Positions 9,001 to 62,966 of a DNA stretch of 64,000 nucleotides are shown piece by piece (the first letter of the stretch is position 1; each line of letters begins with the position of its first letter). Made by a program: the position numbers and the translations under genes. The stretch comes from Ranitomeya imitator (taxonomy: Eukaryota), in contig NC_091290.1 in assembly GCF_032444005.1 (NCBI RefSeq), positions 20,646,001 to 20,710,000 of the forward strand, in the 5' to 3' direction. The notes under the pieces were generated by a model. It made no database searches and had not been told where the DNA came from. It worked only from the letters and a program-made list of their open reading frames with translations.

Positions 9001-12000
9001 GACAGTTAATCAGAAGTTACAGGTTTACAAATATAGATAGTGGGGAAATTGGAAATACAAAATACATCAGAAAGTTACTGAACTTTTCCCTTATACTAAG
9101 AGTAAGCTTTATTTATAGGAAATCAATAAATACTTTTAATGGTAGTGCTATATATAGGCAAATGTTTGCTGAAGGCCCGGGGTCACACGAGCAATGATTC
9201 TCTCATGCAAGAGAATCAGCTCGAGGATGCTAATGACACTTGTTTCAAACTCGGCTAGTGTGATCCAATTCTATTGCATGAAAGAATCGACTTGAGAAAA
9301 AATATCATATCTGCATTGTCCCATAGAATAACATTGGTCCAAGTGCTATCCGATAAAACATATCATGTGCCCTTATAAATATAATATCTACAGCAGTGAA
9401 GCAAAAGAAATGCCTCCTATATCTGTGAAAACCACAATTAATAGAGATATGTAACTATCATGTACCTGTATAAGAAGTTTTCTCATTGCCGATTGTTGAG
9501 ACTTTATTAAGGGATGTGTTGTTTGTCGTAGTTGGTACAGAGAAAGGACCCATGTAGCTTGTGAAAGATGCCAGAGATTGTTCTTCATTGATGATGTCAG
9601 TGTTTGGGTCATACCTAATTTCATTAAAGCCAGCAATGCAAACTCTGAAAATTAATAGATGATTATAATAATTAGTATAGTCAGTTAAAGGAGCAACAAA
9701 GCAAAGCATCACATTTTATATAATAATGTATTTTGGTACTTCTCAGTCATCAGAGTGGGTTCAAGGCACCCCCTTTAAATTAATCCACTGTTCAAATATA
9801 TGAAATATACATGTGTATGTATGTATACAGTATATAAAGTATAATTTTTTTTATATATGCAGTGGAAAAGTGTATATATTGTACCCGTGTTAAGATGCTA
9901 GGTGTTTGTAATATATATACAAAAAAATCAAGAATTATTTCAGAACTTTTACCACCTTTAATGTCAACCATAATCTGTACAATTCAATTGAAAAATAAAT
10001 TGAATTTTTTTGAGGTGGAAAAATAAAATGCAAAAATAATGTGATTGCATACTGTACATATGCATACCCTTAGGCCTGTTTCACAAGTCTTGATATTTCT
10101 GTTACTGGGAAAACCAGTACTGGAGATATCCGTGGTCCGTGTGTGGCATACATATGGCATCCGTGTGCTAGCTGTGTGCCGCATCAGCATCAAACGTACC
10201 AGCACCTGGAAATCAGCGGTAGAGTTTGCACTGTTCCCCGGCTCCAGGTGCTTTGGGCAAATCTTTTCATTGTCCCCTGCTCACGCTGTGATCAGCGCGA
10301 GCAGGGGACAATGTTGAGAGTTGTATTCAGCCCCTGCTATCTACATCAAGTATAAAAAAAGAATAAAATTTAAAAAAACCAATATCCCTCACCTGTCCAA
10401 AGTTGAAAGAATCCATAGTGTCCCACGTTGTAATCCATCTGTGCTACATTTGCTCATCACCATGAGCGGTGGCATGATGCAACCGTTCATGTTGAAGAGC
10501 AAAGGAGAATGATGCGATGCAGAGAGAGTGGGCCCCTGGACCCTAACCCTAGCCCCAACCCTAACCCTATCACTAAGCCCAACACATAGCCCTAACCCTA
10601 GCTCCAACCCTAACCCTAATGGAAAAAAATACAATTTTTAAAATTTTATTATTTTTACCCAACTAAGGGGGTGATAAAGGGGGTTTGATTTACTATTTTT
10701 TGTACTTTGATCATTGTGATAGGATCTATCACAGGGATCAAAATGGAAGAAGATGCCGAGGACCGTGGGATGCAGGAGGTGCCTCAGGTTCCAGGGGGCT
10801 CGGGGTACCCCATTTCTGTCTCCTTTGATGTGTTAGATCATATCAAAGGAGAGAGAAATAAATGGGAAGTCAGACTTGTTTTTTTCGGTTGCTGCTATTC
10901 TGTGAAGTGCCTAGCAGCCAGGCAACCCCCACATGTACTCAAGCTGTCTAGCAGCCGTAAATCATGCAGCTGCGTCAACAAAAATGAAATCTCCAAGCAC
11001 TCACAAATACTCGGAGACCACCCGAGCGTGCTCAGGAAAATCCAACGAGTATTCTCGCTCATCACTAGTAACGCTCAATAATAAGGTCCCTTTTCTGTTT
11101 TGTAAGTTGATGAGCCAGCTGTCAATCTGTGTCGGGGCGTGGTTATAGCTGCCACTCACAGTGTACTAAGCTTTGACTTAAAGGGAACCTGTCACCCCGA
11201 AAATCGCGGGTGAGGTAAGCCCACCGGCATCAGGGGCTTATCCACAGCATTCTGTAATGCTGTAGATAAGCCCCCGATGTTACCTGAAAAAGGAGAAAAA
11301 GATGTTATATTATACTCACCCAGGGGCGGTCCCGCTGCTGGTCAGGTCGGATGGGCGTCTCTGGTCCGCTGCGGCGCCTCCCATCTTCTTTCCATGACAT
11401 CCTCTTCTGATCTTCAGCCACGGCTCCGGCGCAGGCGTACTTTGCTCTGCCCTATTGAGGGCAGAGGATAGTACTGCAGTGCGCAGGCGCCGGAAAGGTC
11501 AGAGGCCCGGCGCCTGCGCACTGCAGTACTTTGTCTGCCCTCAACAGGGCAGAGCAAAGTACGCCTGCGCCGGAGCCGTGGCTGAAGATCAGAAGAGGAC
11601 GTCTTGGAATGAAGATGGGAGGCGCCGCAGCGGACCAGAGACGCCCATCTGACCTGACCAGCAGCGGGACCGCCCCTGGGTAAGTATAATATAACGTCTT
11701 TTTCTCCTTTTTCATGTAACATCGGGGGCTTATATACAGCATTACAGAATGCTGTAGATAAGCCCCTGATGCCGGTGGGCTTACCTCACCCACGATTTTC
11801 GTGGTGACAGGTTCCCTTTAAGCAGCACCTCTATTACTCAAAGCCACAGGCTGCCGCAAGGAATAAAATGTTATCCTGGTAGCCAGGCTTTCAGTGTGGC
11901 TTATGGGCACTTCAGAATGCTATTAACTTGCTGATTAACCCCATATCTATAGGCTAATAGCATTTTTTTATATCACAGCTTCCCTTTAACCTCTTTCCCA

Positions 12001-18000: not shown

Positions 18001-21000
18001 GTTTTGTTTCCGCTGACCAGGATGATTGGGTGTCATTTTTGCCGTTGGCTGAGTTCGCCCTTAATAATCGGGCCAGCTCGGCTACCTTGGTCTCTCCATT
18101 TTTCTGCAATTCTGGGTTCCATCCTCGTTTCTCTTCAGGACAGGTTGAGTCTTCGGACTGTCCTGGTGTGGATTCTGTGGTGGACAGGTTGCAGCAGATC
18201 TAGACTCAGGTAGTGGACAATTTGACCTTGTCCCAGGAGAAGGCTCAGCTTTTCGCTAATCGCAGACGCCGTGTGGGACCCCGACTTCGTGTTGGGGATT
18301 TGGTTTGGTTATCTTCTCGTCATATTCCTATGAAGGTTTCCTCTCCTAAATTTAAACCTCGTTTTATTGGTCCGTATAGGATTTCTGAGATTCTCAATCC
18401 GGTGTCTTTTCGTCTGACCCTCCCAGACTCCTTTTCCATACATAATGTATTCCATAGGTCGTTGTTGAGGAGATACGTGGCACCTATGGTTCCATCTGTG
18501 GAGCCTCCTGCCCCTGTTTTGGTGGAGGGGGAATTGGAGTATATTGTGGAGAAGATTTTGGATTCTCGTGTCTCTAGACGGAAACTCCAGTATCTGGTCA
18601 AATGGAAGGGTTATGCTCAGGAAGATAATTCCTGGGTTTTTGCCTCTGATGTCCATGCCCCAGATCTTGTTCGTGCCTTTCATGTGGCTCATCCTGGTCG
18701 GCCTGGGGGTTCTGGTGAGGGTTCGGTGACCCCTCCTCAAGGGGGGGGGTACTGTTGTGAATTCTGTGGCTGAGTTCACTTCTGTGGTCACAAGTGGTAT
18801 TGCAGTCTCTGGGCTTCCTCCCTCAGGTGTTTTGGTGAGCTCGTTGGCTGCCTTGCTATTTAGCTCCACCTGAGTCTGTCTTCCTTGCTCCTTGTCAATG
18901 TTCCAGTGTTGGATCTGAGCTACTGCATCTTTCCTTGGGCCTGCTGCTCTGCTAGATAAGTGCTTCTAGTTTGTTTTCTGTTTTTTTCTGTCCAGCTTGC
19001 TATTGTCTTTTGCTGGAAGCTCTGAGAAGCAGAGGGGTGCACCGCCGTGCTGTTAGTTCGGCACGGTGGGTCTTTTTGCCCCTTTGCGTGGTTTTCGTTT
19101 TAGGGTTTTTTGTAGACTGCATAGTTCTCTTTGCTATCCTCGCTCTGTCTAGAATATCGGGCCTCACTTTGCTGAATCTATTTCATTCCTACGTTTGTCT
19201 TTTCATCTTGCTAACAGTCATTATATGTGGGGGGCTGCCTATTCCTTTGGGGTATTTCTCTGAGGTAAGTCAGGCTTGTATTTCTATCTTCAGGCTAGTC
19301 AGCTCCTCAGGCAGTGCCGAGTTGCATAGGTAGTTGTTAGGCGCAATCCACTGCTGCTTATAGTTGTGTGAGGATAGATCAGGTACTGCAGTCTACAGAG
19401 ATTCCACGTCTCAGAGCTCGTCCTATTGTTTTTGGTTATTGCCAGATCTCTGTATGTGCGCTGATTACTGCACGCTGTGTTGCCTGATTGCCAGCCATAA
19501 CAAACAGGGCAATCCCCTGGTGGACCCCTGTGCAGATCTGTGCCCTCAACCCTCCTCTATGGGCACTACTTGACATAATTCACTTGATTCATTCAGTACA
19601 AAAAAGCAGGATCTCATCATTCATTTACCAAACTACCCAGTTTATGATTATATAGAGATATCGGTAAATTTATGAATGGGGGTAGTGTAAAATTTGTATG
19701 CAGGTGAAAAGTGCCCCTCCCCCCAAAGTCAATGTTACTGGTGGGCCCTTGGCACCCCAGTCTGACACTGCATATAACCCACTGTTAGTACCACTCATAA
19801 TACTGCCAGGAGAGGGGAAATCGGAGCATTTATGGAGACAGATGGAGAAAGCACAGCGAGTGCTTCTTCCTTGGCTATGAGTGACTGCTGAATGCCACAG
19901 TCAGATAGCATTGCTCTATGAAGTTGGCTACAAAGTATTAGACAGAGATACAGATCTGTAATATACCTGTATAAGGAGGTTCCATGGCGCCGATTCTTGA
20001 GATTGCATTAAGAGAATTTATATTTGATCTAGATAATACAGAGGAGGGATCCATATAGTTTGTGAAAGATACCATAGATTGTTTTTCATTAATGGTGTCC
20101 TTGTTTCGGTTATATTTTATATTATTAAAGCTAGCGATGCTAACCCTGAAAATAAAAAAAATATTTTAGTAGTTAGATTGGTCTTCTAACGGAGTCACAC
20201 AGCAAAAATGTTCACTCATAAATATAGCTGAAAGTCCTGCACCTCAAAGCATTATCTGTAATAAGGGTCCTCAAGCTTCATAAGCCGCATATTTCTGTCT
20301 CCTGAGACTTGTAATGCTCCCGATAAGACAGCAAAAGGTGTTCCAGGGGAATCTCCTTCCAGAACTTCATCCAGGGCATTAGTGAGCTCTAAGACAGTCT
20401 GTGGCACTATGTGGTGGCATCAGATGAACTGATATATAATGTTGCAGAAGTTTTCAATTGGATTCATGTATGGGGAGTGTGAGGGACAATGAATGGCATT
20501 AATGCCATTATCATCCAGGAATTGTGTAGACCCTATCCGCATGACGTAGCTCATTGTATTGCAACAGGAGGCAACCAGGTCGGTCAATGGCCCTAAGATT
20601 TTCATTACCAATGACTATCACATGGAGGCTGGCACAACCCTCTAAGTATATTTTCCCCAGAACATCACTTCCAACCACTAAACCAGTCATGCTGGATATT
20701 GCTCCAGGCAGCTTAACATTCACCATGGGATCTCCAGACTCTGTCACGTGTTAAGTGTGAACCTACTCTAACCTGAGAAGATAACAGTGTGGCAATGTTG
20801 GACATTTGGAACATGTCAGTAATGCTGCATGCTGCCTGGTTGTTCTCTTAATTAGAGCAATCTACCAGTACTTTTTAAGAAATGGGCAACAGAAGACTTG
20901 CAGTAATAATGTCTATATTTTGTCGTCCGATGTCTTTCAATGATAAAAATATAGTTATGGTACCTGTACTGTAACTCGGGGTCCAGTGGTCCATTGAAAT

Positions 21001-32308: not shown

Positions 32309-32360
<52 letters not shown>

Positions 32361-41896: not shown

Positions 41897-41935
<39 letters not shown>

Positions 41936-49079: not shown

Positions 49080-49130
<51 letters not shown>

Positions 49131-51284: not shown

Positions 51285-51318
<34 letters not shown>

Positions 51319-54300
51319 TATGGCCAAAGCGCTGATTCCCTCCGTAGGCCATGTCTGTATTGCCGAGCCCCTAAAATACCAGAACAGCACAACCTGCCAA
51401 ATAGTGACCTATTTTCAAAGCTATACAAATGAGAGAATTCTCCTAAGAGAACAGTTTGTACTTTGACCACAAGGACTATTCAAAGAATTTTAAACAATTT
51501 TTAAATGAAAAATTATATTTTTCTCAATAATGTTTTGTTTTCAGGCAAGTTTTTTTTTTTTTCATTTTAAGAAAAAAGAACCAAACACATGTTTCACAAT
51601 TTCTCTCATATATGCCAATACTCTATAAGTGAACGTAAACTGCTATTTGGCTCAGGGCTAGGAGCGTAGCAGTCATTCTGACCCATCACTGTTTTCCAGA
51701 AATTATTCTGCAATATCTTGTGCAATTGAAAAATTGCAGTTTTACCAGTTAGATATGCCATTTCACTGACCAATATGATTCGCACAGATTCTACCACTGT
51801 AAAACACAGCTCTCTAAATGGTGTGCTTTATTTGCTTGCTTTAAAAGCTCCGATACCGGAGGTCATAATGTTTATAAAACATTTCTCCGAAAATGTACGA
51901 CATACTGTACGTTTCATAATTGTACTTTGTCAGTCCATTACAGTCTACGGCTCTGACGAGTGGCGTTTCCAAATATATTAACGTTTTTTCACCAGACTTA
52001 ATGGAGAGATCGTGATAAGAAAAGCCCTTAAACTCTGCAGCACACAGGGTATAGTAAAGTTTTTTGGGGAAGTGTTGATTGAAAAAAAAAAATAGCAATT
52101 CCATCACTGTTTCTTGGGGTTTTGGTTTTATAGCGTTCACCATGTGACATGTTAACTTTATTATGCAGGCCATAAGAATTACGGTGTCATGAACAAAAAA
52201 AATACACTTTATCTACTAAAATGCATTTTGTGTTATTCTCATCTGAAAGTCCCAACTTTTTCATTTTCAGTCAACAGAGGGCTAAGAGGTAATAAATCCC
52301 ATCTGTGTCACTAAACACTCTACTCTGAGAGAGAGAAGTGGCCAAAAATGCACAAGAGAATAAAACTAATAAAAAAAATAACAATTTTATTAAATTTAAA
52401 CACTAAATTAGACATACAGAAAATGATTGAAACAAAACAAATGCCTCTAATGTGAGGGACGCTGCTGGCTAAGGACCCCATTAAACACACACCTTGTAAT
52501 GATAAGTACACATTAACAATCGAAAGAATAGAGGTAGCTTGCCTATCATGGCCAGTATAAAAAGCCTCAAAAGAAAATGAATGCTTAAATTGCTGGTGCT
52601 TGAGTAGGTTTATACTGGTCAGTGGCATATATTTGAATGCATGCAGATGTATCAAGGCCCAGATGTATCAAGGCAACAGCCTCAATGTCCTGAGACACTG
52701 CTATTTGCTAAAGGAACATGCCACCATTACAAGCCTAAATGAGTCAATGTGCCTGCATAACGTGCTGCTACTCAACATAAGAAAAAGGGCTAAGAGTCAT
52801 AGAATATTACCTTTAGTGTGTGTGCGGTGTACGAGCTGCGTCCCTCCACCACAACGCATGTTTCGTCCCCACTTTTTCACGCCCCCCTCCAGATTTTATG
52901 TTTGCTAGTTCTGCACAACTTTAATCTTTTTTTTGTTGCCATATTCCAGGAGCCATAAAGTTTTTTTTGTTTTTTTCCACCTACAAATCTGTATGTGGGC
53001 TTGTTTTTAGCAGACAAGAATTTGATCAAATAGTACTATTTCCTATTCATATGAATATCATGTGATTATCCAGGTTAAGGAGTGAAGATCTTCTCTATGA
53101 ATGTGATGAGTGTAGGAAGAGACCAGCCTATGATGAGAGCTGCTCGTGTAGGCCAACAATGTGAGAGTGAGACAGCTATTGTGAAAGAAAAAGCCATGTG
53201 TCATGGAGTGCATGGATAATGGTGAGAGCTCTGGAAGTGAACTGAGGAAGGGAAGAGTCCTGAATGTAGTGTAAGCGAAATTCTGGAGGATGAAATGTGG
53301 CCTGACATGTGTTAGTATACAGAGTGGGTCATATATGGGGAAAAACCTGGGTGGGCCATGTATATGGATACACCTAAATAAAATGGGAATGGTTGGTGAT
53401 ATCAACTTCCTGTTTGTGGCACATTATTATATGGGAGGGGGAAAACTTTTCAAGATGGGTGGTGACCATGGAGGCCATTTTGTAGTTGGCCATTTTGGAT
53501 GTATCTTTATGAATGGCCCACCCAGGTGCATCCATATAAATGGCCCACCCTGTATAGTATATTCTAATAACTGTAAAAATGTTAAGCACTGTTTAAAGAC
53601 TAGGCCTCTTATTGAGTAAAGTCCAAAGACTGTCTTGAGAATAATTTCACCCTGCCGCAAGACAGTCCCCAACCAGTGCTATACTACAGTACTGTATAAA
53701 CAGCAGCTATATACCATCCGGCGCTCCCCTCACATACACCATAGAGTTATCCCTTACCATTCATCTCTGTTGTTACCACGACAGCATACGCCACTATGTC
53801 TCCATAGGAAGCATGAAAAGGTGAGAACTCAACAGACATTGCACTATGGAGTACAGATGGGTTATTCTGAATGTCGTTATCGGATAGACCTATGGAGAGA
53901 TCTGCATAAAACAAGTTAATTGGACTGAAAATCTGTAAATTAATGTGGCATAATATTTTTTTTGCTTTTACCGTATATATAGTGGATAGTACTGTTTCTG
54001 CGTTTCCCATGCTTCCTCCCTGCAGTTGTTTTATACAGATGGAAAGCAAATAGTGTTCTGGTCATCCAAGCTACCACTGCATTTAAAGGGAACTTGTCAC
54101 CCCAAAAATCGAAGGTGAGCCCACCGGCATCAGGGGCTTATCTACAACATTCTGTGATGCTGTAGCTAAGACCCCGATGTATCCTGAAAGATGAGAAAAA
54201 GAGGTTAGATTATACTCACCCAGGGGCGGTCCCAGTTCTGTTCTAGTCCAATGGGTGTCGCGGTCTGGTCTGGGGCCTCCCATCTTCTTACGATGACGTC

Positions 54301-57300
54301 CTCTTCTTGTCTTCATGCTGCGGCTCCGGCGCAGGCGTACTTTGTCTGTCCTGTTGAGGGCAAAGCAAAGTACTGCAGTGCGCAGGTGTCGGGAAAGGTC
54401 AGAGAGGCCTGGCGCCTGCGCACTGCAGTACTTTTCTTGACCCTCAACAGGGCAGACAAAGTACGCCTGCGCCGGAGCCACAGCCTGAAGACAAGAAGAG
54501 GATGTCATCGTAAGAAGATGGGATGCCCCAGACCGGACCGCAACGCCCATCGAACCAGAACAGAACCGGGACCGCTCCTGGGTGAGTATAATCTAACCTC
54601 TTTTTCTCATCTTTAAGGATACATCGGGGACTTATCTACAGCATTACAGAATGCTGAAGATAAGCCCCTGATACCGGTGGGCTTATCTCATGTTCGATTT
54701 TGGGGGGGACAGGTTCCCTTTAAAGTCTATGGGGCTGATGCAGACATCCAAGTACAATGCTCGTTAGTTTCCTTCAGCCTGTAGACAGGTGGATGGTTGC
54801 AGCTGCATGTGTCGTGGCCGTGTCACTATCACAGCACATGCATGGAGAGCCCAACAAACAGGCTCTCCATGCATGTGTTGTGACTGTGACACAGCCGCGA
54901 ATCATGCAGCTGTTGCGCCGATCAGCTGATTGGCCGGTGCTATCCAGGAAGCCTGATTTCCCACTGCAGCTTATTCGGCAAGCGCTAGACTTAGCCGAAT
55001 AAGAGGGAACCCGAGAAAATTCGCTCATCTATACTTGTGACCAGAACAGTCAATCAGCCTCCTCCAAATGAAAAGCAACTTTCCAATTTGAGGTGTTCTT
55101 CTTAGAACTAGGCTGATGGCTTCATTTGGCGGAGACAAACTTGTCATAATACTATATAATTACTATTTATACTACGATATTACTATATACACAAAATCAT
55201 GTCCCCAACAAGTTTTAAAGTATAGATAAAGTGGCCAACTCCTTTAATCTAATGAGTATATAACCTTTAAACATTAGGGACATGTGATGTGACGCGTTGT
55301 CCATGCTCATATCGCGTGACCTAATGCTCCAATTACAGAGATTAGGCCTTATTCATATTGAAGCAGAAAACCCATTTAATGAATATTCTTGAAAAAAGGG
55401 AAAGTGTCTGCTTTATAAATATATCTACTGCAGTAAAGCAAAAAACAATGCATCCAGTATCTCAGAAAATGAATAAGTTACAGATATATTTATGTCTCCT
55501 ATACCTGTATAAGTAGATTCCACAGAGCTAATTTCTGAGATTGTATTAACAGATGCTACATCTGTTTTAGTTATTAAAGAGTAAGGACCCATGTAGTCTG
55601 TCAACGATACCAGAGATTGATCTTCAATGATGGTGTCTGTGGTTAGGTCATACTGGATAATATTAAAGCCAGCGATGCTGACCCTGAAATTCAGAAAAAC
55701 ATTATTGTAGTTAGTGTTGTCCGCGAAAGTGGTGCCAAAGTAAAATGCTATTTCATTCACATTTGTATCGTGAAGTCATTCACCTCAATGCATAACCTGT
55801 GGGGGTTCTCTAGCATCGCGCACCATATGTTCTGTCTTCTAGAAGCCCCCAGGCAGCAGGGACTGAATGCAACTGTAACCAATGCACCTCTCTAAAATGG
55901 GTCTACTTTTATTATCATTCAAAATATTATATAATTATATACACCATATTCCAAATTATTATACAAATTGGATTTAAGTGTCATAAAGATTTAATTGTTT
56001 TGTTTTTCAAATAAACTCATGGATGGTATTGTGTCTCAAGACTCAATGGATCACTGAAATCAATCTTAAACACATGTGATAATTAGTTTTCCAGGTGATT
56101 CTAATTAAAGGAAAGCTACTTAAAAATGATGTTCCACATTATTAAGCAGGCCACAGCTTTCAAGCAATATGGGAAATAAAACGGATCTCTCTGCTGCTAA
56201 AAAGCGTTAAATAGTGCAATGCCTTGGACAAGGTATGAAAACATTAGATATTCTACGAAAACTTAAGAGTGATCATCATACTGTGAAGAGACTTGTGATT
56301 GAAACAGAGCACAGACAGAATTCATGCAGATAAAGGCATAATGAGGAAGGTTTCTGCCAGACAAATTCATTGGATTAAGAGAGCAGCTGCCAAAATACCA
56401 CTACAAAGCAGCAAACAGTCATTTGAAGCTGCTGGTGCCTCTGGAGTCTCTCGAACCTCAAGGTGTAGGATCCTTCAAAGGCTTGCTGTGGTGCATAAAC
56501 CTACTATTCTGCCACCCTAAACAGTGTTCACAAGCAGAAACGGTTGCAGTGGGCCCAGATAGATATGAAGACTAATTTCCAAACAGTCTTGTTTACTGAT
56601 GAGCAACCCTGGATGGTCCAGATGGATGGAGTATTGGATGATCGGTGGATGGCCACCATGTCCCAACAAGGCTGCCACGTCAGCAAGGAGGTAGAGGAAT
56701 CACATTTTGGGCCGGAATCATGGGGAAACAGCTGGTAGGGCCCTTTAAGGTTCCTGAAGGTGTGAAAATGACCTCTGCAAAGAATATAGAATTTCTGACT
56801 GACAACTTTCTTCCATGGTCTAAACAGCAGAAACATGCCTTCGGGAGCAAAATCATCTTCATGCTGACAATGCACCATCTCATGCTGCAAAGAATACCCC
56901 TGAGTCATTGGCTGCTAGGGGCATAATAGGAGATAAACTCATGGTGTGGCCACCATCTTCACCTGACCTCAACCCTATAGAGAACCTTTGGAGAATCATC
57001 AAACAAAAGATCTATGAGGGAGGGAGGCAGTTCACATCAAAATAGCAGCTCTGGGAGGCTATTCTGACTTCATGCAAACAAATACAAGCATAAACTCTCC
57101 AAAAACTCACAAGTTCAATGGATGCAAGAATTGTGAAGGTGACATCAAAGAAGGGTCCTATGTTAACATGTAACTTGGCCTGTTAGGCCATGTTCACACA
57201 GTGCGTTTTTTTCTGTGGAACCGCAGCGTTTTTGCCGCTGCGGTTCCGCAGCTGTTTTCCATGCAGGGTACAGTACAATGTACCCTATGGAAAACAGGAA

Positions 57301-60300
57301 CCACTGTGCACATGATGCGGGAATCGGGAAAAAAAGCCGCGCTGAATAGCCGCGGTAAAAAAGAAGTACCATGTCACTTCTTTTTTCGGAGCCGCAGTGG
57401 TTCTGCACCCATAGACCTCCATTGTGAGGTCAAACCCGCAGTAAAACCCGCAGATCAAAAATATATCTGCGGGTTTTATTGCGGTTTGTGGTGCCGAACC
57501 GCTGCAGCAGGAAGTGCGGGGAAGCGGGCGGAAGTGCGTGGGCGGAGTGTGGCTGCCCCGATCCCACCCCCCATGCTCCGATGCCCCCCCCCCCGTGCTC
57601 CAATGCCCCCCCCGTGCTCCGATGCCCCCCGTGCCCTAATCTCCCCCCCTTATACTTACCCGGCCTCCCGGTGTCCGTCCGGCCGTCTTCTCCCTGGGCG
57701 CCGCCATCTTGCAAAATGGCGGGCGCATGCGCAGTGCGCCCGCCGAATCTGCCGGCCGGCAGATTCGTTCCAAAGTGCATTTTGATCACTGAGATAGGTT
57801 ATATCTCAGTGATCAAAATAAAAAAAATAGTAAATGACACCCCCCCCCTTTGTCACCCCCATAGGTAGGGACAATAAAAAAATTAAGAATTTTTTTTTTT
57901 CCACTAAGGTTAGAGTAGGGGTAGGGTTAGGGGTAGGGGTAGGGGTAGGGTTAGGGTATTTTCAGCCATTTTAACCCTAAAAAACTTCCTAGAAAACACA
58001 CAGACTCTGCATAGAAAACTGCATAAAAAAACGCATCAAAAAAACGCACCAAAAAAGCACCAAAAAAAGGACCTGCGTTTTCTGCAAAGAGCTGCGGTTT
58101 CAGTCCTGAAAAAAAAAGGAGGGAAATCAGGAACGTGTGAACATACCCTTAGGAGGTTTTTGGAGTTAAATAGCTTTTTTGTTCAGTGAATGTGACCTCC
58201 TAATGCTGCAAATTCCACAAATGAGCATTTTCAGTTCTTTAAAACCAAATGTTTAGAGATTCTACTGTGCCTCATAATTTGGAGCAGTGCATTGTGAGTT
58301 TGTATTCATTTTGGAGATTATACTGTTATCATTGGGAGGTTTCTTCAATAAAATTCGATGTATAATCTAACGGGTGATGACTTTTATTAGACTGACTGTC
58401 ATTTGCACCAACCATTTAGGAAAATCCAAGAAAAATATTTGCATAATAATTTGGAACCAAAATCTCCAAAATCTGTCTTTTAAAGTTAAAAACTTAGTGC
58501 GGGTACCTGTACTGTAACTCGGGGTCTAGTGGTCCATTAAAATAAGAATGAGTCTTTGTTCCATCACCCACATGAACCCCTATCTTTTTTGACTGCGCAA
58601 ATCTTGCAATCAGTTCTTCCCCAAGGATGGAGGTGACATAGGTGTCGGTCAGCTTGTTCTTAAAATCGTCATAGGTTTTCGATAATATCCCCTGAGGTGG
58701 TTGGTCAGCTAAAATAGAAATAGGAGTTTACATTTTTTTACATAACTGGAAACAAAAGGGACAAGAGCCCTCATAACATTAGAGGTAGAAAACCATGATG
58801 GTACAATCCTTATAAATTGGGCTCACCTACTACCTGGTACCTTTTCTAATACACGGCAGCAATCTTATAAAGGATATGAATGGTTATAAAGAGGTGCTCA
58901 TTATAACCATTTTTCACTTAAGAGATGAGGATTCTAAACAAGGGTCCCCCACTATGAATTCAGAATTCCTAAATAATATGTATGTATAGAGTGTTTTAAA
59001 CTAGACATTTAAATGTGATGTTCTTAGTGAAAATTTTCGTCACAATGTGTGAGCCCATCTGCCATGTCTAGGACTCTACACAAACTGTATACTTGTATAA
59101 CATAGCAATCACCTCTGAGCGCTTCTCTGACTGTGATGGGCAGGATCAGCATTGCCCACTTATGGAGTGGAGGAAGAGACCGCTCTATGAAATGAGCTGT
59201 CCCTGTAGGCCAAGGATGTGCTAGAGAGAGAAAGCTGTAAGAAAAAGCCAGCTCTGTCATGGAGTGCATGGGCAAGGGTGAGAGCTGTCCGGAGGTGAAC
59301 TAACGGAGGAAGAGTTCCATTGCAGAGTGTGAGGGAAATTATGGAGGCTGAAATGTGGCCTGAACATTGTTCATTGTACATTTTTTTGTTTTGCAACAAC
59401 TGTGTTCCAAAAACTGTAAATATGGTAAAGTTTAAGGACTATGCCTCTCATTGAGTGAAGTTATCACTTCTCACAGGCTGTCTTGTGAATGCTTTTACAT
59501 TGCCATAAGAATATAGTCCCCAACCAGGGACATCCTACAGCTCTTACCGTTCATCTCTGTTGTTACTACGGCAGCATACGCCACTATGTCTCCATACGAA
59601 GCATGAAAAGGTGAGAACTCAACAGATATTACACCATGTTCATTGGGTTGTGAACCTGTAAATTAACATAGTATCATATTTTTATATTATTTGCTATACT
59701 TCATTCTCCTTAAAAACTGATTTTATGCTAATTTCAGCTTTAGAAGGACTTAAGAGTAAAAACATGTTGATCATCTATCCACAAAACACAGTTGACTGTA
59801 GCCCCCGACCTTGAGAGCCACAAGATCTCTAGAGTTTCTGAGCATACCATACTTCTTTCCTACAGCCATTGTATAGAGATGAGATGCAAATAAAATGGTG
59901 TTCATCCAAGCTGACGCTGATTTCAAAGTTTATGCAGTAAAGCAAAAAAACAATGCCTCCTATATCACAGAAAATGAATAAATAATATATATGTTTATGG
60001 GTCATATACCTGTGTAAGTAGATTCGACTGAGCCAATTTTTGAGATTGTATTAAAGGAAGTTAGACTTGTCTCAGTTGTTAAAGAGTAAGGACCCATGTA
60101 GTCTGTGAAAGATACCATAGATTGATCTTCAATGATGGTGTCTGTGGTTAGGTCATACTGGATAATATTAAAGCCAGCGATGCTGACCCTGAAAATCAGA
60201 AGATGATTATTGTAGATAGTGAGGATTATTAAAGGAGTGGCAAAGTAAAAACATTTACTGTCACATTCATAGCTAGAAGTTGCAATTTTACTAATAAGCA

Positions 60301-62966
60301 ATCACCCCCTTTATGAATTGGTAGGTTGTGAGTGGTTGTCTCATCATTACTGTGCATCGGTGTTGCCATCATCTTTATTATATGGGTTTGCTGCATCTTG
60401 ATGCCCTTTCTGTCTATGATAATATCTTCTAGGCCCCCCAGGCAGCAAGACCTGGGTACAGCTTAAACCTCTGCACCCCTATGAAATAACCAATATATTT
60501 TACTTATTTCACCATGTATTATTATTGTTTTTATCTTTATAAATACAATCTACCAGTACTTAGAAAGAATTGGAATAAAAATAACAACGTCTTGTTCTCT
60601 GAAGTTTTTAATGTTACATATATAGTGATAGTACCTGTACTGTAACTGGGGATCCAGTGGACCATTAAAATAAGAATGAGTCTTTGTTCCATCACCCACA
60701 CGAACACCTATCTTTTTTGACTGAGCAAAACTCATGATCGATTCTTCTTCGAGGATGTAGGTGACATAAATGTTGGTTAGCTTGTTCTTAAAATCATCGT
60801 ATGTTTTAGATAAAATGCCATCGGGTGGGCGGTCGTCTAAATAGGAAAATTAAAAATTTACATTAATTTACCATAATAGGCACAGAAAGTGAGAAGGACC
60901 CTCATGTAGAAAGCAGCAAACCATCACTGTGTGTTCTTAATAAATTGTGCTCCTCCACCATCTTCTTCCTTTTTTACTACACACTTAGCAGTCTGGCTAA
61001 GAGGTGAGGATCTTAAAAAGGGACTCCCATTATTAATTCAGAATTCCCAAGTAGTCTATATGCAAAAGTCTTGTATAAACTACAAATTTAAATGTGAGTT
61101 TTTTTAGTGAAGATTTGGATCACAATGTGTAAGCTCATCTGCCATGACCAGGCAATCTCATTCAGTTAGTACCCTATACTAATGTTATACCTCTCTTGGA
61201 CCTAAACCTCCTTCAGATGTACTTAGTATGGATATTGCGGCAGGTGGACTCACTCAGCTGCTCCCCGAGGTAGACACAGGAACCCTTCGTATTAAAGTCT
61301 CTGGGTGGTTTATTGCTTCATAAACCACAAAGCAAAGTAATAACACAAAACAGCCTTTCTGGCATAAATGAAAATAAAAAGTCTATACAAACAGTCCTTC
61401 CCAGTAAGGCTCCAGCCCTATGGGATGCAACACACTTCAACTCCAGAATTCCTTGCCTGAGGAGGTAGTGATGGCGAAATCAGTCGAGGGGTTCAAGAGA
61501 GGCCTGGATGTCTTCCTGGAGCGTAATAATATTGTGTCTTACAGTTATTAGGTTGTTTAGAAGGAGGTAGATCTGATGGAATATAGGCTGATCTGGATGG
61601 ACAAATGTCTTTTTTTGACCTTGCTAACTATGTTACTATGTGTTAGGTCTCGAGTTCCCACTTCTGCACAGGAGGAATCTCGGGCCGTCTCCGCTGCGGT
61701 CTCCCATTCCTATCCAGCCGCAGTGGAGTCTGCTCAGCAGGGACGTCGGTCCCAGCGTCTTGCTCGGTCTCGCTCTGTACAGAGAGTTACTGCTGCTTCT
61801 TCAGCTCCTGCCATTAAAGTCAGTGCTGGTCAGCAGCGAGCGGACTTCTCTGGGACTAAGTCCTTATTTGCGCACACTGAGCATGCCCAGGGCAAGATCT
61901 CCCGTTGGAGATCGAGGGTCATGTGCTCAGGATCTGCAGCGCATTCCATTGGTCCTCTTGGCAGGTCTTGGAAGGGCAAAGTTTCTGTGGCCACTTCCTG
62001 TCCTGCAACTATATAAACTGTGCATGACCGCACGGCCATGCGCTAGTGTACAATTATTATGTGTGTGTGTAGATGGATGTATGTCGATGGATGAAAGCTC
62101 CTAAATATCCCTCCCTAGAGTTGTTGATTGCTCGCGGATGATGGTAGCTCTCTAGCGCCCCACTATCCATCTGTATGTTACACACATCACAGCGTCCTTT
62201 AGCTGTGCCTGCCAGTACGGCGCTGTGCGCTTGCCTTGCGCTTTCCATACCCAAGCCTGGGTGGTTAGTGGCGTCCGTCAGTGCGGCATCGCACGCACTC
62301 TTGTGCTCTTATATTACTGTTAAGGTTCTTTTCACACCCAGTTGCGGTGTTGTGCCAGCAAGGGTCTAATCGGACTTCAATCCCTTTTGGGGTTAAGTTC
62401 GCTGACTACTTGCTCGCGCTCTATGTGCGGTACCGCGGTCCTGTGACTTAACAGGATCGCTTTCTTCACGTTGGGTGAGGTTTAACCCGAGTGTTTATAC
62501 TTTTAGTACCGCCATATAGTCTGCCATTTACTAGCAGCGGGTTTCGCCTGCACGGTGGACCCCGGACTGCGAACGCATCTATATCATCTTTCTTGGTGCG
62601 TTCCGCCAGTCCTAACACTATGTTAACTCCTGCCAGAGCTTGCGTCTGGAGACTTCATTCCTCCAAACAGAGATGAAAAACACAGCCGTTGGACATTTAA
62701 CTATGCCAGCCACACCCTTGAGATAGTTATATGGCGAGTGGGTGTCCCTCCCTTGTCTCACCTACTCACCAAAAACCCCAGACTCTTGTAATGACTGGTA
62801 GAACCCCCTTCAGCATATAGTATTCTGGAGAGAAACTTACCGGTCATTTCTGTTGTTACAACGACAGCATACGCCACTATGTCTCCGTAGGAAGCATGAA
62901 AAGGTGAAAACTCAACAGATATTGCACCACCAGATGGATCAGTCTGAATGTTGCTATCTGGCAGAC
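3004..62966 (-). CDS. PTPRJ-like: Multi-exon PTPRJ/CD148-like type I membrane protein (partial, 5' end outside window): 11 tandem juxtamembrane-domain modules + TM + non-catalytic repeat tail
   Basis: 39 exons with AG/GT boundaries, compatible phases and no internal stops. Module motifs [23 protein letters not shown] / [16 protein letters not shown] / [13 protein letters not shown] / VCIAGF / SFTSY resemble, from memory, human PTPRJ VKFSGFEASHGPIKAYAVILTT / TYEDFKKGASDTYVTY / YYNGKLEPLGSYR / ACVAGF / SFSRY. Orthology is not established. Confidence 0.88.
3257..3352 (-). CDS. Cytoplasmic exon L2 (96 nt, phase 2-2)
   Basis: tctttcag|G...GG|gtgagt; [31 protein letters not shown]. Confidence 0.8.
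3827..3871 (-). CDS. Cytoplasmic short exon S2 (45 nt, phase 2-2)
   Basis: acacgcag|T...GAG|gtgagt; [14 protein letters not shown]. Confidence 0.78.
4724..4834 (-). CDS. Cytoplasmic exon L1 (111 nt, phase 2-2)
   Basis: ttcttgcag|G...GG|gtaagt; [36 protein letters not shown]. Confidence 0.8.
5539..6539. mobile_element. Solo LTR (1001 bp)
   Basis: tgttagg...cctaaca termini with 5-bp TSD ACTAT; homologous in reverse orientation to 61641-62617. Confidence 0.85.
6861..6905 (-). CDS. Cytoplasmic short exon S1 (45 nt, phase 2-2)
   Basis: ccacacag|T...GAG|gtgagt; [14 protein letters not shown]; paralogous to 3827-3871. Confidence 0.78.
7697..7772 (-). CDS. Transmembrane exon (76 nt, phase 1-2)
   Basis: aattttag|GC...AAAG|gtaaaat; [21 protein letters not shown] followed by basic stop-transfer RRKK. 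Confidence 0.9.
8045..8355. mobile_element. MITE with tagtgatgag termini
   Basis: Foldback tagtgatgagtgagtatgct ... gagcatactcgctcatcacta; further copy at 8558-8863 and a half copy at ~10905-11067. Confidence 0.8.
8558..8863. mobile_element. MITE with tagtgatgag termini (second copy)
   Basis: tagtgatgagcgagtgtgctc ... gagtacactcgctcatcacta. Confidence 0.8.
9466..9644 (-). CDS. Module 11 exon C (179 nt), membrane-proximal
   Basis: AG/GT flanks; [59 protein letters not shown]. Confidence 0.9.
10073..10720. mobile_element. MITE fragment with internal (ccctaa)n-like repeats
   Basis: tta|ggcctgtttcac terminus related to the element ending at 351; right end not defined. Confidence 0.55.
11182..11817. 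mobile_element. TTAA-flanked foldback MITE (T2-MITE-like)
   Basis: agggaacctgtcacc ... ggtgacaggttccct; TTAA TSD; long internal inverted symmetry. Confidence 0.88.
12671..12872 (-). CDS. Module 11 exon B (202 nt)
   Basis: AG/GT flanks; [32 protein letters not shown]...[11 protein letters not shown]. Confidence 0.9.
13091..13289. mobile_element. Short foldback MITE
   Basis: gtgcagagacagactgccgtatttctcgtg ... cacgagaaatacggcagtctgtctctgccc; TA-flanked. Confidence 0.75.
13358..13486 (-). CDS. Module 11 exon A (129 nt)
   Basis: ctttccacag|AG...AATG|gtaagt; [42 protein letters not shown]. Confidence 0.88.
13809..19502 (+). mobile_element. Full-length Ty3/Gypsy chromovirus LTR retrotransposon (Tf1/sushi-like)
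   Basis: 750-bp LTRs at 13809-14558 and 18753-19502 (TG...CA; only one mismatch noticed by eye), flanking direct repeat AACAGG, polypurine tract just before 18753, internal gag-pol. Confidence 0.97.
14691..18773 (+). pseudogene. gag-pol polyprotein with one premature stop (TAG 18201-18203)
   Basis: CCHC knuckle [14 protein letters not shown], protease FVDSGA, RT YLDDIL, RNase H DAS, integrase HHCC and DDE, then GPY motif and chromodomain ([10 protein letters not shown]...YLVKWKGY) in the same frame after the stop. Start codon uncertain. Confidence 0.92.
19967..20145 (-). CDS. Module 10 exon C (179 nt)
   Basis: AG/GT flanks; [59 protein letters not shown]. Confidence 0.9.
20964..21165 (-). 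CDS. Module 10 exon B (202 nt)
   Basis: AG/GT flanks; nearly identical to module 9 exon B. Confidence 0.9.
21461..21592 (-). CDS. Module 10 exon A (132 nt)
   Basis: AG/GT flanks; [43 protein letters not shown]. Confidence 0.9.
21742..21926 (-). CDS. Module 9 exon C (185 nt, +6 nt in-frame duplication)
   Basis: AG/GT flanks; [37 protein letters not shown]...VKPSFT. Confidence 0.9.
21969..22975. mobile_element. Old TTAA-MITE just upstream of exon C, co-duplicated in modules 5-9
   Basis: ttaaaggggttgtccactac start also at ~27557, 35615 and 37739; inverted arms gtcatctgtgcctgtgagc / gctcacaggcacagatg; boundaries approximate. Confidence 0.6.
23390..24340 (-). mobile_element. Degraded Tc1-like remnant, co-duplicated (also ~20330-20830, ~28340-28830, ~35640-36380)
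   Basis: Paralogous blocks; the 20420-20611 copy translates to DDNG...[12 protein letters not shown] (SPDLNPIE-like). Confidence 0.55.
24370..25970. mobile_element. piggyBac-like element with its right end lost
   Basis: Starts ttaa|ccccttaacgacc at a TTAA that is uninterrupted in paralogous introns (28857, 36411). Contains (gggtta)n. No right TIR. Confidence 0.65.
26028..26229 (-). CDS. Module 9 exon B (202 nt)
   Basis: AG/GT flanks; [32 protein letters not shown]...[11 protein letters not shown]. Confidence 0.9.
26363..26893 (+). mobile_element. Non-autonomous Helitron (531 bp)
   Basis: 5' TC and 3' CTAG ends, hairpin cccgattct-tt-agaatcggg (26863-26882) near the 3' end, inserted between A and T with no TSD compared with empty paralogous sites (e.g. 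~21295). Internal gtccggagctaat repeats. Confidence 0.85.
27056..27187 (-). CDS. Module 9 exon A (132 nt)
   Basis: AG/GT flanks; [43 protein letters not shown]. Confidence 0.9.
27337..27515 (-). CDS. Module 8 exon C (179 nt)
   Basis: AG/GT flanks; [35 protein letters not shown]...VKPSFT. Confidence 0.9.
29189..29390 (-). CDS. Module 8 exon B (202 nt)
   Basis: AG/GT flanks; [32 protein letters not shown]...[11 protein letters not shown]. Confidence 0.9.
29688..29819 (-). CDS. Module 8 exon A (132 nt)
   Basis: AG/GT flanks; [43 protein letters not shown]. Confidence 0.9.
29967..30145 (-). CDS. Module 7 exon C (179 nt)
   Basis: AG/GT flanks; [35 protein letters not shown]...VEPSFT. Confidence 0.9.
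30716..32311 (-). mobile_element. Tc1-like DNA transposon (DD34E) with long TIRs, frameshifted transposase
   Basis: TIR cagtggggcaaaaaagtatttagtcagtc... (~200 bp) at both ends, TA flanks. Transposase 31943-30932 with [22 protein letters not shown], broken by a frameshift near 31520. Confidence 0.95.
32312..32358. repeat. (TA)n microsatellite
   Basis: Directly abuts the Tc1 TIR; other (TA)n runs at ~41900-41930 and ~49083-49127; (AAT)n at ~51284-51315. Confidence 0.95.
33020..33305. repeat. Minisatellite (~20-nt atatactacgtggctg(gg/tg)ca units)
   Basis: More than 10 degenerate tandem units inside the composite element. Confidence 0.85.
34626..34827 (-). CDS. Module 7 exon B (202 nt)
   Basis: AG/GT flanks; [32 protein letters not shown]...[11 protein letters not shown]. 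Confidence 0.9.
35126..35257 (-). CDS. Module 7 exon A (132 nt)
   Basis: AG/GT flanks; [43 protein letters not shown]. Confidence 0.9.
35395..35573 (-). CDS. Module 6 exon C (179 nt)
   Basis: AG/GT flanks; [35 protein letters not shown]...VEPSFS. Confidence 0.9.
36737..36938 (-). CDS. Module 6 exon B (202 nt)
   Basis: AG/GT flanks; [32 protein letters not shown]...[11 protein letters not shown]. Confidence 0.9.
37237..37365 (-). CDS. Module 6 exon A (129 nt)
   Basis: AG/GT flanks, 3-nt deletion; [42 protein letters not shown]. Confidence 0.9.
37517..37695 (-). CDS. Module 5 exon C (179 nt)
   Basis: AG/GT flanks; [59 protein letters not shown]. Confidence 0.9.
38447..38648 (-). CDS. Module 5 exon B (202 nt)
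   Basis: AG/GT flanks; [32 protein letters not shown]...[11 protein letters not shown]. Confidence 0.9.
38977..39163. mobile_element. hAT MITE (187 bp)
   Basis: TIR cagtgtttctcaactccagtcc / ggactggagttgagaaacactg; 8-bp TSD ATCTAAAG. Confidence 0.88.
39539..39670 (-). CDS. Module 5 exon A (132 nt)
   Basis: AG/GT flanks; [43 protein letters not shown]. Confidence 0.9.
41946..42076 (-). CDS. Module 4 exon C, shortened (131 nt, phase 2-1, new donor)
   Basis: [43 protein letters not shown] then AAAG|gtaatc. The original donor at 41814 would give 262 nt, out of frame and with a stop. Confidence 0.7.
42692..42893 (-). CDS. Module 4 exon B (202 nt)
   Basis: AG/GT flanks; [32 protein letters not shown]...[13 protein letters not shown]. 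Confidence 0.9.
43689..44644. mobile_element. piggyBac-like non-autonomous element
   Basis: ttaa|ccccttagtgac ... gtcattaagggg|ttaa. Confidence 0.75.
46110..47600 (-). mobile_element. Degenerate Gypsy pol fragment with integrase before RT (Gmr1-like)
   Basis: Integrase C-terminus ([17 protein letters not shown], 47246-47600) precedes RT ([48 protein letters not shown]). Stops and frameshifts present; ends approximate. Confidence 0.8.
47886..48017 (-). CDS. Module 4 exon A (132 nt)
   Basis: AG/GT flanks; [43 protein letters not shown]. Confidence 0.9.
48625..48803 (-). CDS. Module 3 exon C (179 nt)
   Basis: AG/GT flanks; [59 protein letters not shown]. Confidence 0.9.
49245..49446 (-). CDS. 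Module 3 exon B (202 nt)
   Basis: AG/GT flanks; [32 protein letters not shown]...[11 protein letters not shown]. Confidence 0.9.
49585..50400 (-). mobile_element. 5'-truncated CR1 LINE (RT C-terminus + 3' end)
   Basis: [17 protein letters not shown]...[12 protein letters not shown]...[24 protein letters not shown]...[17 protein letters not shown]; ends approximate. Confidence 0.88.
53758..53889 (-). CDS. Module 3 exon A (132 nt)
   Basis: AG/GT flanks; [43 protein letters not shown]. Confidence 0.9.
54087..54719. mobile_element. TTAA-flanked foldback MITE, same family as 11182-11817
   Basis: agggaacttgtcacc ... gacaggttccct; TTAA TSD. Confidence 0.85.
55505..55683 (-). CDS. Module 2 exon C (179 nt)
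   Basis: AG/GT flanks; [59 protein letters not shown]. Confidence 0.9.
55942..58457 (+). mobile_element. Degenerate Tc1/mariner element, DD37E (TRT-like), interrupted by a MITE
   Basis: TIR ttccaaattattat(a/g)caaat at both ends; transposase remnants FTDE and DNAPSH...[15 protein letters not shown] (37 aa between D and E); several frameshifts. Confidence 0.8.
57186..58148. mobile_element. MITE (PIF/Harbinger-like, tentative) nested in the DD37E element
   Basis: TIRs ggccatgttcacac / gtgtgaacataccc, TTA on both sides, internal (gggtag/gggtta)n. Confidence 0.7.
58507..58708 (-). CDS. Module 2 exon B (202 nt)
   Basis: AG/GT flanks; [32 protein letters not shown]...[11 protein letters not shown]. 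Confidence 0.9.
59548..59655 (-). CDS. Module 2 exon A, shortened (108 nt, phase 1-1, alternative acceptor)
   Basis: The paralogous acceptor is deleted. ttaatttacag|GTTCACAA gives in-frame [35 protein letters not shown]; donor gtaag. Confidence 0.7.
60010..60188 (-). CDS. Module 1 exon C (179 nt, phase 2-1)
   Basis: AG/GT flanks; [36 protein letters not shown]...ESTYT. Confidence 0.9.
60635..60836 (-). CDS. Module 1 exon B (202 nt, phase 1-2)
   Basis: AG/GT flanks; [32 protein letters not shown]...[13 protein letters not shown]. Confidence 0.9.
61440..61640 (+). mobile_element. CR1 3'-end fragment
   Basis: ggaggtagtgatggcgaaatcagtcgaggggttcaagagaggcctggatg... ending in an (actatgtt)n tail. 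Confidence 0.65.
61641..62617. mobile_element. Solo LTR (977 bp), same family as 5539-6539
   Basis: tgttagg...cctaaca termini, 5-bp TSD CTATG, inserted in a CR1 tail. Confidence 0.85.
62841..62966 (-). CDS. Module 1 exon A (126 nt, phase 1-1)
   Basis: ttatgcag|GT...ACCG|gtaagt; [41 protein letters not shown]. Confidence 0.9.

Follow-up and report, generated by a model that had tools for sequence, protein, structure and literature searches.

Background

CD148/CD45-type receptor protein tyrosine phosphatases (PTPs) are believed to work partly by the sheer size of their ectodomains. In CD45 (PTPRC), ectodomain length is varied by the skipping of symmetric exons; the region so varied is mucin-like and N-terminal, and this receptor, which is not of the R3 subtype, carries two PTP domains. 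PTPRJ (CD148, DEP-1 or PTP eta), a type I membrane protein, has a single PTP domain; one PTP_tm domain (PF18861) lies behind its ordinary FN3 repeats, and it keeps the motifs WPD (general-acid loop), KNRY (phosphotyrosine recognition) and YxN. In R3 receptor PTPs, the juxtamembrane domain is an enlarged FN3 domain with the intron phase code 1:1:2:1:2 (PMC5336234). The C-terminal YxN is the phosphorylation and docking motif of R3 PTPs of the PTPRJ/H/O/B type, and the Asp of the WPD loop is conserved throughout R3 PTPs except in PTPRQ and a few invertebrate sequences (PMC5336234). PTPRQ itself combines a very long ectodomain of mixed FN3 types, one juxtamembrane domain and an altered WPD loop (WPE), its substrate having moved off phosphotyrosine (PMC5336234).

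Here, I show that a locus of the frog Ranitomeya imitator shares the R3 layout and intron phases of PTPRJ and departs from it in carrying 14 PTP_tm modules and no ordinary fn3, 11 of these modules lying in the 64,000-nucleotide stretch analysed (the window). It is very probably a fast-evolving neobatrachian PTPRJ paralogue with a 14-copy PTP_tm ectodomain, a non-canonical PTP domain and a surface role that would depend on length.

Results and discussion

On the minus strand, between positions 9466 and 62966, 33 exons repeat the order A-B-C 11 times, each bounded by AG and GT and matched in phase. The exon types were first marked by three direct-repeat families of 11 copies apiece, and alignment of the copies gave the conserved acceptors and donors. 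Joined, the exons yield a stop-free 5,565 nt, so that the triplet count, open length and end coordinates of the original prediction are reproduced exactly. Exons A measure 108-132 nt, exons B 202 nt and exons C 179-185 nt, with the exception of C4 (131 nt). Introns enter A in phase 1, separate A from B in phase 1 and B from C in phase 2, and leave C in phase 1; each module is therefore symmetric, and copies could be gained, lost or skipped in splicing with the frame intact. The RefSeq protein P0001 matches the spliced product at 100%, differing only at A3 and A4, where its acceptor lies 12 nt upstream.

Module 1 of the window (60010..62966), which is module 4 of the 14 in the protein, comprises A 62841-62966, B 60635-60836 and C 60010-60188 and matches P0001 residues 573-741 at 100%. 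It is followed by module 2 (55505..59655; a short A of 108 nt at 59548-59655, B 58507-58708, C 55505-55683) and by module 3 (48625..53889; A 53758-53889, B 49245-49446, C 48625-48803), which is absent in its entirety from isoform X5. Module 4 (41946..48017) has A at 47886-48017 and B at 42692-42893; its C exon (41946-42076) is broken by a (TA)n insertion, and the frame survives only because of a new GTAAT donor (41946) beside the insertion. The former 3' tail of this exon is stranded at 41816..41887 on the same strand, now intronic and outside every exon, where tblastn matches module positions 140-163 (E 8e-21). A tblastn search with the module found no extra or dead module copies in the introns of the window, and five transposon-like intronic ORFs gave no Pfam match.

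Modules 5 (37517..39670; A 39539-39670, B 38447-38648, C 37517-37695) and 6 (35395..37365; A 37237-37365, B 36737-36938, C 35395-35573) are succeeded by module 7 (29967..35257; A 35126-35257, B 34626-34827, C 29967-30145), module 8 (27337..29819; A 29688-29819, B 29189-29390, C 27337-27515) and module 9 (21742..27187; A 27056-27187, B 26028-26229, C 21742-21926, the last being 185 nt long by two added codons). Module 10 (19967..21592) has A 21461-21592, B 20964-21165 and C 19967-20145. The membrane-proximal module 11 (9466..13486; A 13358-13486, B 12671-12872, C 9466-9644) is the most divergent, with about 60% amino acid identity to the others.

A TM exon follows the array at 7697..7772 (minus strand), as had been proposed, entered in phase 1 and left in phase 2; the hydropathy scan and the sequence show a hydrophobic 21-mer and then RRKK, at P0045 residues 2436-2460. 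The exon table thus gives the phases 1:1:2:1, found 11 times, with the TM exon left in 2, which is the R3 pattern. Beyond it, exact mapping of P0045 peptides places the first cytoplasmic exons within 2190..6907 (minus strand), with approximate ends 6860-6907, 4723-4836, 3826-3870, 3256-3354, 3003-3098 and 2190-2234; they open a cytoplasmic array of repeat exons of about 32-38 aa, the last listed being a cassette present in isoform X1 only. At the other end, the gene runs past position 64000, as expected, with three further modules and the N-terminus upstream; the window thus takes in most of what codes for the ectodomain.

RefSeq already models this gene as an 'uncharacterized protein' with six isoforms of 2,830-3,335 aa (XP_069594636-41). 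The predicted protein, of type I membrane topology, holds the 14 modules, the TM segment, a cytoplasmic run of about 16 short repeats and a single PTP domain, and at over 3,000 aa it bears out the expectation of more than 2,000. Cysteines and N-glycosylation sequons are almost absent from the ectodomain (about 2,400 aa), the sequons numbering 8 against 33.6 +/- 5 expected from composition, or 0.33 per 100 aa versus 3.2-6.1 in relatives (3.4 in Kogia PTPRJ).

The identification of one triplet with one PTP_tm domain holds, the Pfam matches being collinear with the exons (profile positions 1-24 in A, 28-92 in B and 94-124 in C). Exon B alone reaches 54-58 bits (E 2e-15), above the PF18861 gathering score of 26.3 bits; a profile search finds the anticipated repetition as 14 PTP_tm stretches across the full protein (1,430 bits), in which ordinary Pfam fn3 has zero matches. 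Pfam matched nothing in the N-terminal 120 residues, and in the cytoplasmic repeats it gave a weak DUF2666 match but none that convinces. It had been supposed that the stalk domain was amplified rather than the FN3 domains. A three-exon juxtamembrane unit has indeed been multiplied, but the contrast with FN3 falls away, because the stalk is itself an enlarged FN3-type domain (PMC5336234); what was amplified is therefore one FN3 subtype and not a non-FN3 domain.

A structural model of a single module (module 8) has a pLDDT of 80, with low confidence over the last 23 or so residues, and has its best fold matches in the membrane-proximal domains of PTPRJ, PTPRB and PTPRV, followed by PTPRM FN4 and uroplakin 3. 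It lies closest to the one membrane-proximal domain that PTPRJ has in human, mouse and chicken (34% identity to human residues 822-974; TM-score by query 0.72). As modelled, the module is an FN3-type beta-sandwich, so that the ectodomain appears to consist of FN3-type domains only, apart from about 110 N-terminal residues without domain assignment. The tandem-pair model (modules 7-8, alignment of 15 rows) has a pLDDT of 36, too low to bear on whether the geometry is flexible or, as first proposed, rod-like. The ectodomain may be pictured as a string of beta-sandwich modules of about 145 aa, most with low-confidence linkers of about 20 aa. The same enlarged membrane-adjacent beta-sandwich occurs in the ectodomain of uroplakins 3a/3b and in PTPRM FN4 (R2B) (PDB 8a17, 8jj5_C; Swiss-Prot models), at 12-16% identity, in single copy per protein and with other partners and cytoplasmic parts. 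Membership in the uroplakin 2/3 family was considered and rejected, the likeness being one of fold, set against a 14-module array with a PTP domain.

The duplication units take in the introns, at 85-96% identity, which suggests unequal crossing-over. By this route the three-exon PTP_tm unit would have been multiplied in tandem to 14, replacing all ordinary FN3 repeats. Every module differs from every other, at 3-28% of nucleotides; between modules 8 and 9, identity is 97% in exons and about 96% in introns. From start to start, modules are spaced 1.7-9.3 kb apart, with introns that vary in length and in inserted elements. The dN/dS ratio is below 1 in every pair, at 0.26-0.38 for pairs within modules 1-4 and 0.34-0.76 for those within modules 5-10; for the youngest pairs, values of 0.5-0.76 on few changes may reflect relaxed constraint. 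In the module tree, the Ranitomeya modules form one clade, within which eight pair 1:1 with an orthologous R. variabilis module over short distances and young copies of the two species show no one-to-one pairing; module 11 occupies its own branch, paired with R. variabilis module 16.

Evidence of transcription comes from Logan contigs of 60-120 nt, from runs guessed to be RNA, and gives neither expression level nor full-length isoforms; runs X19 and X20 are identical data filed twice. The RNA-like contigs cover exons only (B5 and C5, for instance), and all sampled words of B8 are present in run X5; run X6, from another species, covers one intronic repeat only on the stretch examined. A-to-B and B-to-C joints fall at the predicted boundaries with GT..AG, ending exactly at 37237 and 35572/3 in module 6 and at 35126 in module 7. 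Since the aligner splits joints across near-identical modules, these establish the types of junction and not which modules are joined; past the 35126 joint, the sequence fits the beginning of B8 better than that of B6 or B7. Two joints that go back were put down to cross-mapping between near-identical modules, back-splicing having been considered and rejected.

The RefSeq isoforms skip modules in register, one in X5 and about three in X6, in analogy with the exon skipping of CD45. It might be argued from this that the array is a pool of cassettes, from which each transcript takes few modules or in which some exons are dead, the 2,400-aa ectodomain being a maximum of the gene model. The damage to C4 would fit, as would a run X5 joint linking the B5 end with the C6 start (a one-module in-register skip unless it reflects cross-mapping), and so would the lack of any directly seen C-to-next-A (module-to-module) junction in the 60-120 nt contigs. 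Such a pool is nonetheless unlikely, as all 33 exons have an open frame and AG/GT sites, dN/dS stays under 1 for every pair, eight modules have kept orthologous partners in R. variabilis, and four of the six RefSeq isoforms hold every module.

The single Y_phosphatase domain is coded beyond the window (P0001 residues 3043-3274), and with the single-pass TM segment it gives the protein the R3 architecture. Among solved PTP domains, the nearest is that of PTPRJ (288-293 bits), followed by PTPRB (233), PTPRH (199), PTPRO (186) and PTPRQ (175); PTPRQ, the more distant match, is the source of none of the R. imitator modules. In a PTP-domain tree built without PTPRB, PTPRH and PTPRO references, the gene falls in a long-stemmed, frog-only clade (100/100), separate from the one that holds alligator and whale PTPRJ, and is therefore a PTPRJ paralogue and not an orthologue.

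The catalytic Cys and Arg and the Q-loop are kept, and together with the R3 architecture and the proximity to PTPRJ they would suit a fully active CD148-like phosphatase whose long ectodomain served kinetic segregation, that is, size-based exclusion from close contacts. The remaining motifs make this very unlikely: WPD has become WHQ, KNRY has become KNRQ and the P-loop reads HCRTGTGR, whereas the 15 canonical relatives in the alignment keep both WPD and KNRY, and among R3 PTPs the WPD Asp is otherwise conserved apart from PTPRQ, whose substrate is changed, and a few invertebrate sequences (PMC5336234). No YxN motif is present in the last 60 residues, where such motifs number one or two in canonical relatives (typically YQNT and YENL). 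The loss of WPD and KNRY is common to the orthologues of Phyllobates, Bufo, Anomaloglossus and Engystomops (100/100 clade). Judged by motifs only, the domain would have lost catalytic activity, and the analogy with CD148/CD45 is weakened because neither the WPD Asp nor the KNRY Tyr is present. The cytoplasmic part of this paralogue would be a phosphatase of weak or non-canonical kind, or a scaffold that binds phosphotyrosine, rather than a CD148-like enzyme, and the protein would owe its action chiefly to ectodomain length, serving at the cell surface as a spacer, barrier or coat whose length is tunable by evolution and splicing.

That mis-assembly or false duplication inflated the array is barely credible, in spite of the near-identity of modules 8 and 9 and of an older R. 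imitator assembly that gave fragments only (P0002, P0007 and P0046, with P0002 reaching no more than 84% identity to that modelled now), for the modules all differ mutually, their introns and spacings are unlike, exon words are present in independent runs, and the independent R. variabilis assembly holds 16 modules, including the eight 1:1 partners.

Two further unnamed RefSeq models, R. variabilis LOC143806508, the orthologue, and Lithobates pipiens LOC143929620, resemble the R. imitator gene in their PTP_tm array, TM helix, degenerate PTP domain and scarcity of sequons and cysteines. The original prediction of a lineage-specific paralogue is thus upheld by the frog-specific clade and the proximity to PTPRJ, but the gene is not confined to this lineage, R. 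variabilis having 16 modules and L. pipiens 28. In the tree, the L. pipiens modules group apart, in a clade shared with the one module of Rana temporaria, which indicates that the ranid array was amplified independently. In the annotated model of the Phyllobates orthologue, a Thr-rich mucin-like insert stands in place of modules, and Bufo gargarizans has a long ectodomain of ordinary FN3. The eta-like R3 paralogues of Rhinatrema (XP_029438325) and Rhinophrynus (KAM4723203) are alike in having one PTP domain and an ectodomain of about 1,900-2,000 aa, but theirs consists of 19-20 ordinary fn3 and a single PTP_tm, and their catalytic motifs are canonical. A Pelobates protein has two near-identical PTP_tm flanking an fn3; it was weighed as a third independent amplification, but a recent duplication and a model artefact are both possible.

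The literature searched held nothing relevant on a PTP_tm array or on a tyrosine phosphatase of R. imitator; the supposition that no equivalent had been described stands for the papers searched, while models do exist in RefSeq, all unnamed.

Conclusions

PTP_tm, hitherto seen once per protein next to the membrane, can act as a repeat unit, and the locus shows exon-module amplification in clean form: phases are symmetric, units include their introns, and modules are orthologous across species. By its sequence, it also represents a probable new lineage of vertebrate pseudo-phosphatases. The natural series of 1, 2, 14, 16 and 28 domain copies, or of a mucin insert, on a common cytoplasmic part that appears to have abandoned classical catalysis could be used to test size-dependent behaviour of surface receptors.

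More tentatively, and with considerable doubt, neobatrachian frogs may possess giant surface pseudo-phosphatases that descend from PTPRJ and make up a family not yet described, with the length of the ectodomain as the selected and fast-changing trait, reached by at least three routes (PTP_tm arrays arising independently in dendrobatids, with 14-16 copies, and ranids, with 28; the Thr-rich mucin-like insert of Phyllobates; the FN3 repeats of Bufo gargarizans), with a copy number apparently still shifting between sister species and a length tunable by splicing. If so, such a history would speak for a protein that serves as barrier, decoy or spacer where an epithelium or gamete is exposed, perhaps in conflict with pathogens.

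Exon array and domain identity

A repeat search of the window revealed three exon types (A, B and C), each marked by direct-repeat families of 11 copies, and alignment of the minus-strand copies showed an acceptor AG and a donor GT conserved around each type. The resulting table holds 33 minus-strand exons between 9466 and 62966, with AG/GT at every exon, A measuring 108-132 nt, B constantly 202 nt and C 179-185 nt; joined, they yield 5,565 nt free of stops. It agrees to the base with the original prediction of 11 open, phase-matched A-B-C triplets upstream of a transmembrane (TM) exon, the latter being a 76-nt exon at 7697-7772 (minus strand; phase 1 in, phase 2 out) coding for a hydrophobic 21-mer and then RRKK. 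Introns fall in phase 1 before A and between A and B, in phase 2 between B and C, and in phase 1 after C, which makes every 155-173-aa module symmetric (1-1). Only C4 (131 nt) departs from these sizes; disrupted by a (TA)n insertion and a partial duplication, it keeps frame only via a new GTAAT donor, its former tail lying stranded at 41816-41887 (minus strand). A tblastn sweep found no extra or dead module copies in the long introns of the window.

PTP_tm (PF18861), the membrane-proximal domain of PTPRJ, is collinear with the triplet (A, profile positions 1-24; B, 28-92; C, 94-124), exon B exceeding the Pfam gathering score by itself (E 2e-15 to 2e-14). In deuterostome R3 receptor PTPs the FN3 domain next to the membrane is enlarged, and its intron-phase code, 1:1:2:1:2 (Chicote et al., PMC5336234), is exactly that of A, B, C and TM here. 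Module 8 was modelled with AlphaFold from a 46-row alignment (mean pLDDT 80, pTM 0.75; pLDDT below 50 over the final ~23 residues): residues 1-148 form a beta-sandwich, and the module is closest in structure to the one membrane-proximal domain of PTPRJ from mouse, human (822-974) and chicken (TM-score by query 0.72-0.75, identity 29-37%), followed by PTPRB and PTPRV, then by the R2B RPTP membrane-proximal domain and uroplakin-3 ectodomains; the best solved structures are PTPRM FN3-4 (8a17) and the uroplakin complex (8jj5_C). Pfam and fold thus bear out the identification of the unit as the PTPRJ domain, save that it had been set apart from FN3, of which it is itself a variant.

Gene and protein layout

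Searching 1.84 billion representative proteins with a profile built from the 11 B exons retrieved a protein of 3,320 aa matched over 14 stretches, the R. imitator "uncharacterized protein" XP_069594637, whose residues 574-2435 are 100% identical to the spliced product save two 4-aa additions, which arise because RefSeq places the A3 and A4 acceptors 12 nt farther upstream. A signal peptide and a ~80-aa Cys-containing cap without domain assignment precede 14 PTP_tm modules, ordinary fn3 having zero Pfam matches in the whole protein; then come the TM helix, ~16 cytoplasmic repeats and a single PTP domain (residues 3043-3274), encoded outside the window. The repeats (residues 2460-3030; 32-38 aa, one small exon each) are of the type Leu-Asn-Cys/Ser...Glu-Gln...Lys-Ser-Lys-Glu and show no convincing family match in Pfam; their first six exons lie at 2190-6907 (minus strand), the rest past the window start. 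The cytoplasmic juxtamembrane region is a second exon-level tandem array in the gene. Two protein models come from an older assembly of R. imitator: CAJ0967508, a fragment with modules whose identity to the present gene model does not exceed 84%, and CAJ0967506, a distinct 182-aa product with one module (56-64% identical). They represent either this array, in collapsed or chimeric form, or a neighbouring paralogue.

Coding constraint and splicing

Frame and splice sites are intact in all module copies. Pairwise Nei-Gojobori dN/dS between window modules is 0.26-0.38 among modules 1-4 (dS about 0.32-0.40), 0.34-0.76 within modules 5-10 and 0.36-0.69 between groups.

Exon-bearing runs (short-contig data sets, presumably RNA) were retrieved with a single-exon query and their contigs placed on 34626-39670, runs X19 and X20 being one data set deposited twice. 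The X19/X20 contigs (organism A) cover exons and leave introns bare, except one repeat at ~38.85-39.19 kb, and they contain joints whose ends coincide with the donors of A exons (35126, 37237) and the acceptors of B exons (36936+AT, 38648); a contig joint in run X5 connects the final base of B5 with the opening base of C6 and has GT..AG ends. Because modules are near-identical, the aligner divided each contig among different copies, so that the joints show A-to-B and B-to-C splicing with module identity not assignable; no C-to-A (module-to-module) junction was captured in these contigs. RefSeq isoforms differ as well: X1-X4 are distinguished by skipping of cytoplasmic repeat exons, X5 omits module 3 precisely, and about three modules are left out of X6 in register, such skipping being what a symmetric-phase array allows.

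Several introns carry elements of their own. At 38851-39188, between exons A5 and B5, contig depth is very high in 4/4 runs, one from another species, so that this stretch is probably a transcribed repeat of high copy number. Two direct repeats, each at least 300 nt long, 100% identical and 4,944 nt apart (13809-14108 and 18753-19052), with adjoining duplicated ORFs, lie in the module 10/module 11 intron, and 13809-19052 looks like a very young LTR-type retroelement insertion. Modules 3 and 4 have long open, retroelement-like stretches in their introns (minus strand, 45600-47630 and 49928-50308), three pieces of which had no Pfam match at E 0.01, and tandem ~20-nt units lie at 33035-33277 inside the long B7-C7 intron.

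Origin of the array

Three groups of modules can be told apart: 1-4 of the window together with the three copies upstream (75-83% aa identity), 5-10 (77-95%), and the membrane-proximal module 11 alone (~60% to every other). Introns among modules 6-10 also show 85-96% identity, hence the duplication units were genomic segments, a pattern which suggests array growth by unequal crossing-over. R. variabilis has 16 modules, including 1:1 partners for eight R. imitator modules; the youngest copies are not 1:1 (R. imitator protein modules 2-3 and 9-10 vs R. variabilis 2-4 and 10-12), suggesting that copy number has turned over since the two species split.

In a tree of 73 modules, those of Ranitomeya and Phyllobates form one clade, with the single Bufo, Anomaloglossus and Engystomops modules outside. 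Ranid modules form their own clade (100% support), the single Rana temporaria module being sister; Lithobates pipiens LOC143929620 (5,214 aa) has 28 modules, of which 20-22 pair with three of bullfrog. The separate ranid clade implies that the array architecture originated at least twice; the amplification, proposed as that of a lineage-specific paralogue, is not unique to this lineage.

The Phyllobates terribilis orthologue (XP_073514000) has only two annotated modules, separated at residues ~125-440 by ~300 aa of Thr-rich, mucin-like tandem repeats (unit like Thr-Asp-Pro-Tyr-Asn-Thr-Glu-Thr-Thr-Thr-Thr), an alternative route to a long ectodomain. Unlike the module arrays, other amphibian "eta-like" giants owe their length to 19-20 ordinary fn3 domains plus one PTP_tm.

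Ectodomain surface and PTP domain

The R. imitator ectodomain (2,407 aa, XP_069594637 residues 29-2435) has 8 N-x-S/T sequons vs 33.6 +/- 5 expected from its composition (minimum 18 in 2,000 shuffles), a depletion that stands as an observation, module copies being non-independent samples. Density is 0.33 per 100 aa vs 3.2-6.1 in six relatives, and similar in other array proteins (R. variabilis 0.29, L. pipiens 0.49, bullfrog 0.37); array-type ectodomains, at 0.3-0.5, lie roughly ten-fold below single-module relatives (3-6). Sequons are absent from 10/14 modules and Cys from 13/14, cysteine being nearly absent in all array-type ectodomains.

Among solved single-domain chains, the PTP domain is closest to PTPRJ (288-293 bits), ahead of PTPRB (233), PTPRH (199), PTPRO (186) and PTPRQ (175). 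Its motifs are altered (KNRY to KNRQ, WPD to WHQ, HCSAGVGR to HCRTGTGR; Q-loop kept), a state also seen in Phyllobates, Anomaloglossus, Bufo and Engystomops, whose proteins group with that of R. imitator in the PTP tree as a long-stemmed clade with 100/100 support; 15 canonical relatives in the same alignment retain all motifs. The neobatrachian clade keeps the catalytic Cys and Arg in its conserved altered P-loop and has lost the C-terminal YxN motifs, Phyllobates alone having a possible remnant (YYNV). The L. pipiens domain is also degenerate (WTT, HCSSGACR). Among R3 PTPs the WPD Asp is conserved save in PTPRQ, with its changed substrate, and a few invertebrate sequences (PMC5336234). From the motifs, I infer a PTP domain that may be weak, re-specified or non-catalytic; the domain of the clade is a candidate for a pseudo-phosphatase, or for a re-specified enzyme, among vertebrate R3 PTPs.

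Proposed function

The array architecture is present in automated RefSeq models of several frogs, all unnamed, and a literature search found no paper describing it. Beyond the observed exon array and its coding constraint, the domain and gene identity, the mode and lineage pattern of amplification and the degenerate PTP motifs, the protein may owe its action to the length of its ectodomain, serving as spacer, barrier or coat, with that length tuned by module copy number and exon skipping, and its signalling would be non-canonical.
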